DNA of 64,000 bases from Ranitomeya imitator. Taxonomy: Eukaryota. The notes under the pieces were generated by a model. That model was not told where the DNA came from, made no database searches, and saw only the letters and a program-made list of their open reading frames with translations. The position numbers were made by a program, and so were the translations under genes. Below, in pieces: positions 39,456 to 55,943 of this stretch (position 1 is its first letter; the number at the start of each line of letters is the position of its first letter). The DNA lies in assembly GCF_032444005.1 (NCBI RefSeq), contig NC_091291.1:139314001-139378000 (forward strand), written 5' to 3'.

Positions 39456-39856
39456 TCATTGCTGCGGAGTGGTGGAGTTTCTTAGGAAGGGCTCTAGGAT
39501 GAGGTCGGAGTTCTTCCCCTCGCTTTCCTCGCTGTACAGGTCGTGTTCCTTGATGTAGTCCAGGACGGCATCGGGCACCAGGTACCGCACGCTCATGCCC
39601 CGCCGCAGGGCTCGGCGCACCTTGGTGGAGGAGATGTCGTTGGTGATCCACTCCTGCACCAGGTGGATATTGTCCCGGTGCTTCCACAGGACATCGGACT
39701 CGTAGATGAACTTGCTGGCGTCGCTGCCCATCCGGGTGATGCAGACCAGACCGAACGACGACACAATTTCTACAACGTGCTCCGGTTTCCAAAGGTTCGG
39801 GACCCCGAGAGACTCCAACATGTCGGCTCCACAAAGAAGCTTAACCCGAGGAGGCG
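39456..39856 (-). CDS. nmnat1: NMNAT1 last coding exon (401 nt)
   Basis: [16 protein letters not shown]...[27 protein letters not shown], containing the ISSTxxR motif. TTTCAG acceptor. Confidence 0.96.
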
Positions 39857-40057
39857 CTGAAAGTAAGAGAAGACAGTAACACCGGCAGCATCAGATCTGA
39901 TGGGGGTGTAGTGTATTATCTGTACAGAGTCACACAATGATATTATAGTTGGAGCATGCTGGGGGTTGTAGTGCTCTGTGCATACACTATAACTGGACTG
40001 TGTCGGTCATATTATAATCCATGTAATGTGTGACTCCGGTCCGTGCACGGCGCGTAC

Positions 40058-42822: not shown

Positions 42823-43005
42823 NNNNNNNNNNNNNNNNNNNNNNNNNNNNNNNNNNNNNNNNNNNNNNNNNNNNNNNNNNNNNNNNNNNNNNNNNNNNNN
42901 NNNNNNNNNNNNNNNNNNNNNNNNNNNNNNNNNNNNNNNNNNNNNNNNNNNNNNNNNNNNNNNNNNNNNNNNNNNNNNNGCTCCGTGCCCCCTTCTCATC
43001 TTTAC

Positions 43006-43189
43006 CTTAATGCTAGAGCGGTCTCCGTCCATTCCTTCTTTAAACATTCCCAGGGGTCCACCTCTATCCAGTCACAATTTTCAGTAGCCAGCTGTGCCAT
43101 GGCCAGACGATGAGACCCCTCAACAAGCCCCCTCTTCTTATACCCATCACTCACTGGAGAGATAATACCTTTCACAACCTTGTATTTTC
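43006..43189 (-). CDS. nmnat1: NMNAT1 second coding exon (184 nt)
   Basis: [62 protein letters not shown] between TTTGCAG and GTAAAG. Confidence 0.96.
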
Positions 43190-43235
43190 CTGCAAAAAAA
43201 GAAAAAAAAACATTAAAGTATTTATCCTGAGTTTT

Positions 43236-44067
<832 letters not shown>

Positions 44068-47900: not shown

Positions 47901-48758
47901 ATTATAATGTACTCCATGCTGCTGCTTCTGAACATGCTACAAAGAGACAGGGGAGCAATAATTCCCCTTTTCTTTGTGTGTTGTGTATAGGAAACAAAGA
48001 GGCTAGTCTACTCCCACAGGCTTAAAGAGAACTGAAAATTTCAGAAAGAAGCTACAGATGGGACAACGTGTTAAAATGTTAAGATGCATGTGATGTATTG
48101 ACTCATGCACACACATGCCAGTTTATTTTGAAAAGAGACCAGTCAGGGGGTTATACATGGCAGATCATAGAGTGGAAAGAGTGAAAAAGCATCTACAGTC
48201 TCAGGGAGGGTGGAGAAAACAGGATGACAATTTGGAGGTAAGCACATGTAGGTAAAGCATTTCAGAAATAAAGTTGTGCTGATACATAAAAACTAATGAA
48301 GGTAGCAATATCCAGGATATATTACTGAGAGGGGCATGGTCACAAGTGAAAAGTCCGAACCAGCGAGAAGACTGCAAACTGGAATCAGGAGGTCTGAAAA
48401 TGAATGATAATTGCAGAATGAAACTTAGTACCTAATAACATATGTAACAATCATTTTCTCTACATTCTAATTACTGAAAATAATGAAAATGTCCCCACCT
48501 ATGACCAGCCCCCTCCACAGAGTCCACGCATGTGTACAGCAGAGGGCGCTGCCCGCACAGTATCACAGACTGGAGAATGGTCCCAGTGTGCGGCCGGCAG
48601 ATGCCCACACATCACATAGCTCCGCTGAATACTTTTGTCTGCATCCAACCAACTGTATGAACCATTGAGATGCTAATCCGTCCCAGGCCGCTCCCTTCCC
48701 CCCCTTTCACAGATGCCACGCTGCCCCGTGCCACTATTGTCCTGTAGCTGCATCCGCC

Positions 48759-48881
48759 ATGCTCCTTTGGGTGGCTCAGTCTCTGGCTATCACAGTGATG
48801 GTCTGTGTCATAGTCACTAACTGGCTCGTGGTGAAGAGTGCCGAGGTCCTGCACGGCGTCATCCGCAAGCTCCACCGGTAA
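48759..48881 (+). CDS. Candidate 40-aa single-pass membrane micropeptide, or the terminal exon of an unresolved gene
   Basis: tccgccATG, then MLLWVAQSLAITVMVCVIVTNWLVVKSAEVLHGVIRKLHR*. 30 of the 39 codons after the ATG end in G or C. Strong upstream acceptor CCCCCTTTCACAG at 48712. Confidence 0.5.
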   Translation: MLLWVAQSLAITVMVCVIVTNWLVVKSAEVLHGVIRKLHR

Positions 48882-49364
48882 CGGAGACTGGAGTCCGGCG
48901 CAATGGTGAAGAATTAACCCATGCGACACCAGAAGCAAAGTTGGCATCCTGTTTCCAAAAAGACAAATCTTGGGTCATAAGGCCGAAGTGACAAGTGCAG
49001 AAGTGGCGCAGAAAAGAAGAAAACCGAACAAAACTGGCAAAAGAATTAAAAAAAGAAATGTTGGTTTATGAAGGTGGGTACGAGGCGACATCGCGCATGT
49101 TCCCGGAAATTCCTCTGGAAAACGTAAGGTGAAATTGTGCAACTTTCTCATTAAGGCCGGAGACACACTAACATTTGTAAAATCGCTCCGATGTTGTTCC
49201 CGAAAAGTCAGACGAGTGTCATGCGACCTTCGTGCAAGTACAATGCGATTTTCATCACCTAGCATCCGAAAGAAATGTGACTACAATGCGATTTTAACAT
49301 TAGCGTTTACAAAGAGTAATTATCTGTCATATAAAGTTTTAAAAGGAAATATTCTCCAATACAT

Positions 49365-49520
49365 ATATAGGAGTTTCTCACCAAAATTAGAATATCATCA
49401 AAAAGTGAATTTATTTCAGTTCTTCAATACAAAAAGTGAACCTCATATATTATATAGAGTCATTACAGACAGAGTGAACTATTTCACGTGTTTATTTCTG
49501 TTAATGTTGATGATTATGGG
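49365..49520. mobile_element. Tc1-like terminal fragment
   Basis: TTCTCACCAAAATTAGAATATCATCAAAAAG... resembles an amphibian Tc1 end as I recall it. Confidence 0.55.
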
Positions 49521-49829
49521 CGGATAGTATTGGGGTTGATGTCGGCTTTGTATTGGCAGCTGAAATCAAGCCCAGGGGTTAATAATGGAGAGGCGTCATT
49601 TGGTCAGTACCGGACACCAGTATTGTAGCCAAAACCAGGAGTGGAACAATCAGAGGAAAAGTAGAAACTTGTCACCGCTTCTGTATTTATCACGCACTGC
49701 TGGCTTTGGTTACAAATACAGATATAAAATCCTGACTGTGTGAACACGGCCTTCAGAGTCTCCTCTGCAGCGTAGGAGGAGAGCAGTACAGCGGGCACAG
49801 AATGAGCCGGGAGCCGCGTTACATTATTC

Positions 49830-49930
49830 ATGGCTGAGGATCAGGTGACAGACGACATGATCCACTACTTTCTAGCCCACGTCTCCCATCACCTCGGCCG
49901 CTGGTTACCCCGAACCCACAAATCCAGATT
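49830..49930 (+). CDS. Nested four-TM protein gene (TMEM274-like by position), coding exon 1
   Basis: MAEDQVTDDMIHYFLAHVSHHLGRWLPRTHKSR(L), then a GTAAGT donor in phase 2. A second in-frame ATG lies at 49857. Confidence 0.78.
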
Positions 49931-50013
49931 GTAAGTGCGCCCCCTATCTGCTACACGAGCAGCGACCCGCCATGATGGTCCCTAATCTCTCCTGTCTTCT
50001 CCCTTTTCTCCAG

Positions 50014-50076
50014 GCTGGTGACCGTGGCATCCTCGGGGGTCGCCCTGACCATCCCGCAGCTGTATGTTCTGCTCAG
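50014..50076 (+). CDS. Nested four-TM protein gene, coding exon 2 (TM1)
   Basis: Long pyrimidine tract plus CAG, LVTVASSGVALTIPQLYVLL, GTCAGT donor; phase 2 to phase 2. Confidence 0.82.
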
Positions 50077-50938
50077 GTCAGTAGAAGTCTTTACCATATA
50101 TAATACCCAATGAGATATTTTCATGCATTTTGTACAGGATGCATTTTGTAATCGTGGCTTCTAGAATATGAGCCCCCATTGTTTACACTGCTGGCTGCAA
50201 TAAAGGGGTTGTACAGGGTAGGAAAAACATGGCTGCCTTCCTCCAAAAGCACACAATGGAATATTACAATATTTACAGCCGGCATGTGGGGTCTTACCTG
50301 TCCTCTCAGCTTGGCTGGTGGTCCTACATGATTTCGGGATGACTGACCCTGCGGCCTGTCCCATAGCTCTACCTCCCGCTCACCGCGTCCTCCATGATAA
50401 ACCTGAGCACTAAATACTACAAGGTATAAAACCTCCATAAAGATGATGCCGTTATAGGAAGGTAACGCAGCAACATATTACACAGAGCAATGCAGAGGAG
50501 GGATAGAGGGGCGACTGGCAGGATAAGGGTGCAGCATTTTAATATGCCCCCATCCTAGGCCTGTGTGGGCAATGGCAGAGGAAACGCTCCTATTCTATAG
50601 TATAGGGCAGCAAATTATGGCACTCCTGCTATTGTTACACTACACCTCCCAGCATGCCCTGACTGCCTGCACAAGAGCTGGACCCCGACATAGGTGATTC
50701 CTCTCCACAGCCCAAGACCCCGACTGATGAAAGGATTTAGCATCGTATAGCAGGTATGTTACAGAGCTGCGCACCCTTCCTGATCGCTGCCAGTGCCCCT
50801 TTAAAGTGTTGTCTGGTTTAGGTAATACTTTATTTAATAGAGTTCCACGTTGATAAACTGTATGGAGGTGGGGGGGGGGGGGGGGTCCGCATCTCAGGCT
50901 GGTGTTTGTAGATCGGACTAACAATATTTTCCCCCCAG

Positions 50939-51018
50939 GCCGAGCTCATCGCGATTTTGCAGCCAACCTCTTCTCAACAACCTGATCAGCAACATCGGCT
51001 TCACCCTATTCGCAACCG
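50939..51018 (+). CDS. Nested four-TM protein gene, coding exon 3
   Basis: TTTTCCCCCCAG acceptor, PSSSRFCSQPLLNNLISNIGFTLFAT, GTGAGG donor; phase 2 to phase 1. Confidence 0.82.
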
Positions 51019-51231
51019 GTGAGGGTCCGCACAACATTACATGCAGCATATAAAGGGGGATCTAATAAAAAAAACAAAGGGGCTCATATGTTGGGGCTAC
51101 GTGGATGTTTTTGAAAAATCTAAACTTTTTGAATATTCCTTAGAGTGGTCTCCAACCGGTGACTCTCCAGCTACTAAAAAGCTACAATGCCAAACATTCC
51201 TAAACAGCCGCAGCCCACTGTCATGCGCTAA

Positions 51232-54200
51232 CAGACCACCTTCTATTACTGCCCTGCGCTGACAGTCCACCTTCTATTACTGCCCAGCGCTGACAGTCCA
51301 CCTTCTATTATTGCCCGGCGAAGACAGTCCACCTTCTATTATTGCCCAGCGCTGACAGTCCACCTTCTATTATTGCCCTGCGCTGACAGTCCACCTTCTA
51401 TTATTGCCCAGCGCTGACAGTCCACCTTCTATTATTGCCCGGCGAAGACAGTCCACCTTCTATTATTGCTCGGCGCTGACAGTCCACCTTCTATTATTGC
51501 TCGGCGCTGACAGTCCACCTTCTATTACTGCCCTGCGCTGACAGTCCACCTTCTATTACTGCAGGCGATGACAGTCCACCTTCTCTTACTGCCCTGCGCT
51601 GACAGTCCACCTTCTCTTACTGCCCTGCGCTGACAGTCCACCTTCTATTACTGCCCTGCGAAGACAGTCCACCTTCTATTACTGCCCTGCGCTGACAGTC
51701 CACCTTCTATTACTGCCCTTACAGTCCACCTTCTATTACTGCCCTGCGCTGACAGTCCACCTTCTATTACTGCCCAGCGAAGACAGTCCACCTATTACTG
51801 CCCTGCGCTGACAGTCCACCTTCTATTACTGCCCTGCGCTGACAGTCCACCTTCTATTACTGCCCAGCGAAGACAGTCCACCTTCTATTACTGCCCTGCG
51901 CTGACAGTCCACCTTCTATTACTGCCCTGCGCTGACAGTCCACCTTCTATTACTGCCCTGCGCTGACAGTCCACCTTCTATTACTGCCCTGCGCTGACAG
52001 TCCACCTTCTATTACTGCCCTTACAGTCTACCTTCTATTACTGCCCTGCGCTGACAGTCCACCTTCTATTACTGCCCTGCGCTGACAGTCCACCTTCTAT
52101 TACTGCCCAGCGAAGACAGTCCACCTTCTATTATTGCCCTGCGCTGACAGTCCACCTTCTATTACTGCCCTTACAGTCCACCTTCTATTACTGCCCTTAC
52201 AGTCCACCTTCTCTTACTGCCCTGCGCTGACAGTCCACCTTCTCTTACTGCCCTGACAGTCCACCTTCTATTACTGCCCTGCGCTGACAGTCCACCTTCT
52301 ATTACTGCCCAGCGAAGACAGTCCACCTTCTATTACTGCCCTGCACTGACAGTCCACCTTCTATTACTGCCTGCGCTGACAGTCAACCTTCTATTATTGC
52401 CCTGCGCTGACAGTCCACCTTCTATTACTGCCCTGCGCTGACAGACCACCTTCTCTTACTGCCCAGCGCTGACAGACCACCTTCTCTTACTGCCCTGCGC
52501 TGACAGTCCACCTTCTATTACTGCCTGCGCTGACAGTCCACCTTCTATTATTGCCCTGCGCTGACAGACCACCTTCTCTTACTGCCCTGCGCTGACAGTC
52601 CACCTTCTATTACTGCCCTGCGCTGACAGTCCACCTTCTATTACTGCCCTGCGCTGACAGTCCACCTTCTATTACTGCCCTGCGCTGACAGTCCACCTTC
52701 TATTACTGCCCTGCGCTGACAGTCCACCTTCTATTACTGCCCTGCGCTGACAGTCCACCTTCTATTACTGCCCTGCGCTGACAGACCACCTTCTATTACT
52801 GCCCTGCGCTGACAGTCCACCTTCTCTTACTGCCCTGCGCTGACAGTCCACCTTCTATTACTGCCCTGCGCTGACAGTCCACCTTCTATTACTGCCCTGC
52901 GCTGACAGTCCACCTTCTATTACTGCCCTGCGCTGACAGTCCACCTTCTATTACTGCCCTGCGCTGACAGTCCACCTTCTCTTACTGCCCTGCGCTGACA
53001 GTCCACCTTCTCTTACTGCCCTGCGCTGACAGTCCACCTTCTCTTACTGCCCTGCGCTGACAGTCCACCTTCTCTTACTGCCCTGCGCTGACAGTCCACC
53101 TTCTATTACTGCCCTGCGCTGACAGTCCACCTTCTATTACTGCCCTGCGCTGACAGTCCACCTTCTCTTACTGCCCTGCGCTGACAGTCCACCTTCTCTT
53201 ACTGCCCTGCGCTGACAGTCCACCTTCTATTACTGCCCTGCGCTGACAGTCCACCTTCTATTACTGCCCAGCGAAGACAGTCCACCTTCTATTATTGCCC
53301 TGCGCTGACAGTCCACCTTCTATTACTGCCCTTACAGTCCACCTTCTATTACTGCCCTTACAGTCCACCTTCTCTTACTGCCCTGCGCTGACAGTCCACC
53401 TTCTCTTACTGCCCTGACAGTCCACCTTCTATTACTGCCCTGCGCTGACAGTCCACCTTCTATTACTGCCCAGCGAAGACAGTCCACCTTCTATTACTGC
53501 CCTGCACTGACAGTCCACCTTCTATTACTGCCTGCGCTGACAGTCAACCTTCTATTATTGCCCTGCGCTGACAGTCCACCTTCTATTACTGCCCTGCGCT
53601 GACAGACCACCTTCTCTTACTGCCCAGCGCTGACAGACCACCTTCTCTTACTGCCCTGCGCTGACAGTCCACCTTCTATTACTGCCTGCGCTGACAGTCC
53701 ACCTTCTATTATTGCCCTGCGCTGACAGACCACCTTCTCTTACTGCCCTGCGCTGACAGTCCACCTTCTATTACTGCCCTGCGCTGACAGTCCACCTTCT
53801 ATTACTGCACTGCACTGACAGTCCACCTTCTATTACTGCCCTGCGCTGACAGTCCACCTTCTATTACTGCCCTGCGCTGACAGTCCACCTTCTATTACTG
53901 CCCTGCGCTGACAGTCCACCTTCTATTACTGCCCTGCGCTGACAGACCACCTTCTATTACTGCCCTGCGCTGACAGTCCACCTTCTCTTACTGCCCTGCG
54001 CTGACAGTCCACCTTCTATTACTGCCCTGCGCTGACAGTCCACCTTCTATTACTGCCCTGCGCTGACAGTCCACCTTCTATTACTGCCCTGCGCTGACAG
54101 TCCACCTTCTCTTACTGCCCTGCGCTGACAGTCCACCTTCTCTTACTGCCCTGCGCTGACAGTCCACCTTCTCTTACTGCCCTGCGCTGACAGTCCACCT

Positions 54201-54458
54201 TCTCTTACTGCCCTGCGCTGACAGTCCACCTTCTATTACTGCCCTGCGCTGACAGTCCACCTTCTATTACTGCCCTGCGCTGACAGTCCACCTTCTATTA
54301 CTGCCCTGCGCTGACAGTCCACCTTCTATTACTGCCCTGCGCTGACAGTCCACCTTCTATTACTGCCCTGCGCTGACAGTCCACCTTCTATTACTGCCCT
54401 GCGCTGACAGTCCACCTTCTCTTACTGCCCTGCGCTGACAGTCCACCTTCTATTGCAG
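51232..54458. repeat. 31-bp tandem array, about 100 copies, filling intron 3 of the nested gene
   Basis: Unit TTCTATTACTGCCCTGCGCTGACAGTCCACC, running directly into the exon 4 acceptor. Confidence 0.97.
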
Positions 54459-54589
54459 CGTTTGCGCTCATCCTCGTACTTGTGGAGCTGATACCGTGTT
54501 GGCTGAAGACCCTTTTTCACATATTTGGGGTGGCCTCCTTCATCGAGGGGATCTGCACCATTCTAGTGACATCTCTGGCTGCAGAATGT
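54459..54589 (+). CDS. Nested four-TM protein gene, coding exon 4
   Basis: AFALILVLVELIPCWLKTLFHIFGVASFIEGICTILVTSLAAEC, GTAAGT donor; phase 1 to phase 0. Confidence 0.82.
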
Positions 54590-54936: not shown

Positions 54937-55003
54937 GCCATGAGCACTCCAGCTCTGTACTACCTGTCTGTGGTGCAGTCCTCCATCAGCGTCTTATCTA
55001 CAG
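54937..55003 (+). CDS. Nested four-TM protein gene, coding exon 5
   Basis: TTTTGCAG acceptor, AMSTPALYYLSVVQSSISVLST, GTGTGT donor; phase 0 to phase 1. Confidence 0.75.
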
Positions 55004-55812: not shown

Positions 55813-55943
55813 TGTTTTTCCTGATCGTTGGCTCTTTCTGGCTTTCCAACTCCATTTTTCCTGGGATGGTCTTTAGTAAAGAAACTAGAACCGGCATCTG
55901 CTATGAAGTAGTGACCTGCTGCCCATGTACATGGCACGTCTGA
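55813..55943 (+). CDS. Nested four-TM protein gene, coding exon 6 (stop)
   Basis: T-tract plus GCAG acceptor, VFFLIVGSFWLSNSIFPGMVFSKETRTGICYEVVTCCPCTWHV*. First downstream AATAAA at 56686-56691. Confidence 0.75.

Follow-up and report, generated by a model that had tools for sequence, protein, structure and literature searches.

An alternative first exon of frog TMEM274 carries a conserved 40-codon open reading frame, a candidate membrane micropeptide gene

Small proteins encoded in the 5' leaders of longer genes include transmembrane (TM) proteins, of which SLC35A4-MP is an example. SLC35A4-MP (PMC12396333) and STREMI, a dual-function product of an upstream open reading frame (uORF) (PMC13303939), are membrane microproteins encoded by uORFs on the mRNAs of multi-pass proteins, while the regulins, which include phospholamban, sarcolipin, myoregulin, and DWORF, are single-pass peptide subunits of SERCA (PMC8396278). 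The subject of this report is an open reading frame (ORF) of 40 codons, here called the mini-ORF, located in a 64,000-nucleotide (nt) stretch of Ranitomeya imitator DNA (contig NC_091291.1, positions 139,314,001 to 139,378,000) that was analysed as a whole and is referred to as the window. It is carried by exon 1a of TMEM274, a gene described as a novel gene in mouse (Tmem274) and as a unitary pseudogene in human (TMEM274P), with weak expression everywhere (PMC6886504). The mini-ORF is probably a genuine coding unit, specifying a micropeptide of 40 residues that would cross the membrane once and is conserved across frogs.

The mini-ORF and its conservation among frogs

The ORF, its start context, and the block that precedes it have the following positions.

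48759-48881, plus strand: mini-ORF, 40 codons and then TAA; peptide MLLWVAQSLAITVMVCVIVTNWLVVKSAEVLHGVIRKLHR, with a predicted N-terminal TM helix and a basic amphipathic tail KSAEVLHGVIRKLHR.

48753-48762, plus strand: start-codon context RCCATGC, kept in the alignment in five of five complete sequences.

48528-48668, no strand assigned: conserved block, 64-83% identical across all five frogs, putatively a promoter.

The ATG at 48759 lies in the context tccgccATGc, the peptide has one predicted hydrophobic helix, and each of the last 13 codons ends in G or C, all as described in a first-pass annotation of the window made from the sequence alone. Size by itself is at chance level, with 278 ATG-initiated ORFs of at least 40 codons in the window.

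Other loci were retrieved by searching TMEM274 exon 5 against a representative library, followed by a word search with the Mixophyes protein. The loci and contigs compared come from Engystomops pustulosus, Mixophyes fleayi, Ascaphus truei, Aquarana catesbeiana (bullfrog), the skink Lerista, the fish Megalops (tarpon), and two frog mRNA contigs. The mini-ORF is intact in the window, in the species designated L001, and in Engystomops (L005, 9800-9922), Mixophyes (L004, 10001-10123), and Ascaphus (L006, 8880-9002), always with 40 codons and with the ATG and the stop in identical columns; the five complete copies are closed at codon 41 by TAA, TGA, TAG, TAA, and TAA, that is, by three different stop codons. 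A sixth frog, represented by the mRNA contig L008, has a partial mini-ORF from codon 3 onward, following an Illumina adapter. A word search with the peptide matched only one 65-aa Logan ORF (P0001), 90% identical over 40 residues, in genomic-looking contigs of another frog, and a word search with a profile of two species likewise matched nothing else.

At the codon level, the maximum-likelihood ratio of non-synonymous to synonymous substitution rates (dN/dS, or omega) is 0.126, and the likelihood-ratio test against omega=1 gives 2dlnL = 56.4, corresponding to 28 log-likelihood units (p = 6e-14). Pairwise omega values calculated by NG86 range from 0.05 to 0.26, and against Ascaphus dS is above 1, with peptides that are still 73-90% identical. 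Variable columns at codon positions 1/2/3 number 12/4/28 (p = 4e-5), and in the other two frames and in the antisense frames the differences are mostly non-synonymous. The mini-ORF contains no gap and has an internal identity of 80-86%; identity is 26-58%, with gaps, in the 19 nt past the stop, while the 90 nt upstream of the ATG are 49-74% identical and contain 5-18 gaps. On these alignments, the mini-ORF is under strong purifying selection across Anura.

At 48537-48549 the promoter-like block has a CTCF-like core CAGCAGAGGGCGC, and at about 48655, around 100 nt before the mini-ORF ATG, it has a TATA-like site that reads TATGAA in the window and TATAAA in three other frogs; the true 5' end of exon 1a is probably downstream of 48660. 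On the other side, a GA(A/G)TTAACC element followed by CCAG (48905-48935), 25-60 nt past the mini-ORF stop, is kept even in Ascaphus, to which the rest of the 3' part of exon 1a is not alignable. The mini-ORF frame itself is open back to 48669, where it reads CHAAPCHYCPVAASA-M, and a CTAAT at 48673, a pyrimidine tract, and a CAG at 48710-12 are all present in this interval. The frame open from this presumed acceptor is present in the window sequence, but 2-nt and other indels break it between species. Unlike the RCCATGC start, the ATGs that precede it at 48670 and 48713 are not conserved in the frog alignment.

Exon 1a and the transcripts of TMEM274

The exons and the stop codon on which the transcript structure depends are given below.

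48504-49073, plus strand: exon 1a, alternative TMEM274 leader, in the extent covered by RNA-derived contigs; donor AAG/GTGGGT at 49073.

49069-49071, plus strand: TGA that closes the TMEM274 frame just before the exon-1a donor; no variant there in four runs.

49720-49930, plus strand: TMEM274 exon 1b, alternative first exon with the canonical start ATG at 49830, from a spliced contig joined to 50014 and from frame reconstruction.

50014-50076, plus strand: TMEM274 coding exon accepting the splice from exon 1a and exon 1b (joints 49073 to 50014, 49930 to 50014, and 50076 to 50939).

50939-51018, 54459-54589, 54937-55003, and 55813-55943, plus strand: further TMEM274 exons, the last of which holds the stop codon.

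The frog TMEM274 orthologue is encoded on the plus strand by six coding exons and is a protein of 190 aa whose canonical N-terminus, M[IF]HY..AH from exon 1b, is shared by the frogs, the skink, and the fish. Logan contigs from four studies were placed on 47950-51200, and they carry GT..AG joints, which argues that the source runs are RNA. Exon 1a is covered by contigs spanning 48504-49071 (X15), 48734-49071 (X11), 48561-48995 (X1), and 48527-48891 (X5), and the GT..AG joint from 49073 to 50014 is found in contigs of three studies (X1, X11, X15); one contig of 1125 nt passes from exon 1a to 50014-50077 and then into another 491 nt of downstream exons. Exon 1a and exon 1b are each joined to 50014, and TMEM274 thus has two alternative first exons. 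The exon-1a donor is conserved in L001, Engystomops, and Mixophyes, and the exon 1a-to-3 architecture is also that of the L008 mRNA contig and of the models that NCBI gives for Engystomops and Mixophyes.

This splice pattern shows the map that had been proposed from the sequence to be wrong. The donor at 49073 exists, as does the acceptor-like TCTCCTCTGCAG ending at 49770, but the predicted junction from 49073 to 49771 is to be rejected: the joint seen in the three studies is that from 49073 to 50014, and the contig 49720-49930 crosses 49770 unspliced. The acceptor CAG ending at 48712 is likewise present as a motif but is not used, because contigs 48504-49071, 48527-48891, and 48561-48995 cross it unspliced, nor is it conserved, being AAG, AGG, or absent in other frogs. 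The proposal of an unannotated micropeptide on TMEM274 transcripts, on the other hand, is supported by a plus-strand exon spliced to TMEM274 exons and by purifying selection. The findings that the first-pass annotation had named beforehand as contrary to it are absent: the orthologues show no frameshift and no stop, dN/dS is not close to 1, and a plus-strand transcript is present.

The relation between the mini-ORF and the TMEM274 frame differs from species to species. Exon 1b, with its ATG at 49830, is skipped by exon-1a transcripts, and the mini-ORF lies about 1.1 kb 5' of it (1.1-3.5 kb at the Engystomops, Mixophyes, and Ascaphus loci, all of which keep exon 1b). In the window species, the next TMEM274-frame ATG of the exon-1a isoform leaves only 64 residues. 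In the L008 mRNA, which has the architecture 1a-3-4-5-6-7, an ATG 131 nt after the mini-ORF opens a TMEM274 protein of 180 aa with a new N-terminus of 24 residues, and Engystomops has the same bicistronic layout with a gap of 78 nt, both of its database proteins beginning there. The mini-ORF is therefore upstream of a main start on the same mature mRNA, as a uORF is, in these two frogs, and is not in the window species, L001, and Mixophyes, whose exon 1a has no TMEM274-frame ATG. The suggested bicistronic transcript with the four-TM protein holds for L008 and Engystomops but fails in the window species, where exon 1b is skipped and the TGA at 49069-71 intervenes. Since a TMEM274-frame start is found in exon 1a in only two of the five species, the mini-ORF is the sole conserved ORF of the exon-1a isoform. 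It is also unrelated to the downstream protein: a BLASTP comparison with frog TMEM274 (P0008) finds no alignment at E <= 100, which disposes of the echo of the fourth TM segment that had been perceived, and the codon 41 stop, conserved in all frogs, separates it from the TMEM274 frame.

Other features of the region were recorded. An ORF of 136 codons in another frame of the TMEM274 exons, starting at ATG 49068, six bases before the donor, is probably due to chance because the corresponding frame in the L008 mRNA runs for only 45 codons. On its minus strand, the window also has coding exons of NMNAT1 (43756-44067, 43005-43253, and 39459-39890). Beside exon 1a, contigs of two studies carry a minus-strand spliced RNA with an intron at 48394-48498 (CT..AC ends) and exons at about 48499-48530+ and from 48393 down to at least 48240, which is probably a 5' untranslated region (UTR) exon of NMNAT1 or a divergent long non-coding RNA; since it starts or passes beside exon 1a, it points to a bidirectional promoter rather than to a gene that is simply nested within NMNAT1 intron 1. 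The intron separating exons 1a and 1b contains, at 49382-49693, a high-copy interspersed repeat with a contig depth in the thousands and many loose ends, and the intron between exons 50939-51018 and 54459-54589 is filled by a 31-nt minisatellite (51232-54458). A Rfam scan of the whole window gave no match. At the bullfrog locus, the RefSeq model XP_073459851 (252 aa; L011, 16571-16804) reads the exon-1b region in a frame other than that of the conserved MIHYLLAH... peptide and merges 1b and the next exon without an intron; it is probably a mis-model.

Predicted product and competing explanations

The peptide is hydrophobic over residues 1-25, with Kyte-Doolittle means over 19 residues of up to 2.4, and this N-terminal segment contains the invariant core MVCVIVTNW; in the tail, K26, K37, and R40 are conserved and R36 is found in four of the five species. 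The AlphaFold2 model is a single helix from residue 2 to 39 with a predicted local distance difference test (pLDDT) score of 89, a predicted length sufficient to span a bilayer, and both hydropathy and model fit a TM micropeptide. Searches for relatives were negative: a Pfam scan of the 40-aa and 70-aa readings returned no family at E <= 10, a PDB profile search with the peptide had no match, the look-alikes in the ESM Atlas, with a best score of 0.78, were uninformative, and a degenerate DNA pattern for MVCVIVTNW had no match in JGI metagenome contigs.

If the mini-ORF is a coding unit, exon-1a transcripts spliced from 49073 to 50014, without exon 1b, would be engaged by ribosomes that initiate at the conserved RCCATGC ATG and release one continuous helical peptide. 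Two established principles bear on its fate, namely the positive-inside rule for topology and the post-translational insertion of chains as short as this one. The former would place the tail in the cytosol and the N-terminus on the lumenal or extracellular side; as for the latter, the helix of a chain of 40 residues leaves the ribosome only at termination and would have to be inserted after translation. T20, N21, W22, and C16 form an invariant face, polar and aromatic, that may serve, as in other small regulatory subunits, in helix-helix packing with a partner membrane protein, for which TMEM274, produced by the same locus, is the obvious candidate, a guess suggested by shared transcription.

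Several observations weigh against this interpretation. No known family matches the peptide, phospholamban, sarcolipin, SMIM, and similar families included, and its translation is something that we infer. The runs are only guessed to be RNA, although GT..AG joints and nearly empty introns speak for it, and contigs give neither strand nor abundance. A transcription start in the window species at 48504 or further upstream would place six ATGs ahead of that of the mini-ORF. The mini-ORF stop is 192 nt before the first exon junction in the window (192-241 nt in all species), and by the exon-junction-complex rule, which is established for nonsense-mediated decay (NMD), a terminating ribosome at such a distance would mark the mRNA for degradation, a circumstance that suits a regulatory uORF equally well. 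At the bullfrog TMEM274 locus, moreover, neither the mini-ORF nor the promoter-like block is found within 16.7 kb upstream of exon 3, a gap of 500 N excepted, and the mini-ORF is thus not universal in frogs or has moved; CTNNBIP1, not NMNAT1, lies upstream at that locus, and a ranid mRNA contig has a different leader of 478 nt. Outside frogs, a hidden Markov model of the peptide and a nhmmer search with the promoter-like block gave no match within the fetched skink and tarpon loci.

A more far-reaching form of the coding interpretation, which must be regarded as doubtful, sees in the mini-ORF an independent frog gene about 200 million years old, for which the TMEM274 exons are merely the 3' UTR; some membrane protein, perhaps TMEM274, would depend on the peptide as an obligatory small subunit or chaperone, and alternative first exons, instead of a bicistronic mRNA, would let the locus encode both components of a membrane complex. 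In a bolder variant, the nascent or released helix would take the transcript to the endoplasmic reticulum (ER), coupling synthesis of the micropeptide to local translation of TMEM274 where the downstream start is kept.

Unlikely is a cis-acting, peptide-dependent regulatory uORF, translated as in the coding interpretation but serving to control how much TMEM274 is made from exon-1a transcripts and not to yield a free peptide; it could block or permit re-initiation, trigger NMD, or have its nascent hydrophobic helix take the mRNA-ribosome complex to the ER. Such a function is compatible with the TMEM274 ORF lying downstream on the same mRNA in the L008 species (131 nt) and Engystomops (78 nt), with the NMD-prone position of the stop in all species, and with the weak expression of TMEM274 everywhere (PMC6886504). 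However, the lack of a TMEM274-frame ATG in exon 1a in three of the five frogs (window, L001, and Mixophyes), together with the TGA and the 64-residue remainder in the window, means that there is no conserved downstream cistron to regulate, and selection spans all 40 residues, TM core included, and not just those near the stop.

It is improbable that the mini-ORF is an alternative N-terminal exon of TMEM274 in which an internal intron of exon 1a removes tail and stop and gives a five-helix fusion. The Mixophyes protein P0003 does start with MLLGLAKSLALTLMVCVIVTNWLVVT and run on into TMEM274, and the modelled intron has GT..AG ends. Nevertheless, the fused reading is found in only one predicted Mixophyes model and requires a weak, non-conserved donor, CAA/GTACCC, whose GT is missing in L001 and Ascaphus (codon AGC). 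Furthermore, the 15 tail codons and the position of the stop are conserved with synonymous changes, from which it follows that the tail is read; the window contigs and the L008 mRNA are unspliced across the mini-ORF, and in the window the TGA at 49069-71 closes the TMEM274 frame whatever happens upstream. The model concerned, XP_075045776 (L004, 10001-10365), starts at the mini-ORF ATG and drops an internal intron of about 190 nt with weak sites; the fusion is likely an annotation artefact that hides a coding sequence (CDS) of 40 codons.

A non-coding origin of the conservation, from a promoter-proximal DNA or RNA element or an exon of the antisense RNA, with a fortuitous ORF, is strongly disfavoured and has a very small probability. 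The abundance of ORFs of similar size in the window, the conserved non-coding block just 5', and the minus-strand spliced RNA overlapping the neighbourhood would agree with it, but they do not account for the three-base periodicity of the substitutions, an omega of 0.13, the lack of indels despite dS above 1, three different stop codons in one column, the sharp edges of conservation at ATG and stop, or the lack of any such pattern in the antisense frames. Finally, the last exon of an unannotated paralogue, which the first-pass annotation had also put forward on the strength of the acceptor-like motif at 48712 and the frame open from 48669, has a close to negligible probability, considering that no contig is spliced into 48713, that conservation does not extend to the CAG, that from species to species the upstream frame is broken or reshaped by indels of 2 nt and 12 nt, and that the peptide has no similarity to TMEM274.

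Comparison with known systems

The mini-ORF has two properties of a small ORF micropeptide, namely at most 100 codons on a transcribed RNA and purifying selection that keeps start, stop, and length. Few micropeptides have so clean an evolutionary signature, with fixed length and no indel across the deepest split of living frogs. No micropeptide is annotated at this locus, and in public data it can be traced only in the 65-aa Logan ORF and, as the initial 26 residues, in a single predicted protein of Mixophyes. If the coding interpretation is right, the leader exon of TMEM274 is a second coding unit, tied to TMEM274 as a true uORF in some species and carried by a separate isoform in others, and the frogs offer a natural experiment on how uORF peptides become coupled to main ORFs or uncoupled from them. 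Gene models are corrected as well, namely the Mixophyes fusion and the alternative N-termini of Engystomops, which probably arise because annotation pipelines cannot place a CDS of 40 codons.

With TMEM274 the mini-ORF shares the locus and the downstream exons, but it is not homologous to any part of that protein and has its own frame and its own stop. The conserved peptide uORFs (CPuORFs) that stall ribosomes are similar in being upstream ORFs conserved at the amino-acid level, and in two frogs the mini-ORF also precedes the main ORF; in contrast to CPuORFs, its conservation extends over an entire hydrophobic helix instead of concerning a C-terminal arrest motif, and its downstream cistron is not conserved. 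The regulins differ in orientation, since the TM segment of the mini-ORF peptide is N-terminal and its basic tail C-terminal, and the mini-ORF does not derive from a stand-alone transcript; likeness lies in the class of 30-50 residues, in one TM helix with conserved polar residues and a short charged flank, and in the presumed helix-helix binding to a larger membrane protein. SLC35A4-MP and STREMI, of about 100 residues against 40, have no sequence similarity to the mini-ORF peptide, which is known only from frogs, is encoded in an alternative first exon, and is putative as a translated product; in the window species exon 1a skips the main start codon, and the two ORFs are consequently not on one mRNA there. 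In both cases, nevertheless, a small conserved ORF is located in a 5' leader whose downstream exons encode a multi-pass membrane protein, and the peptide itself is selected and predicted to span the membrane.
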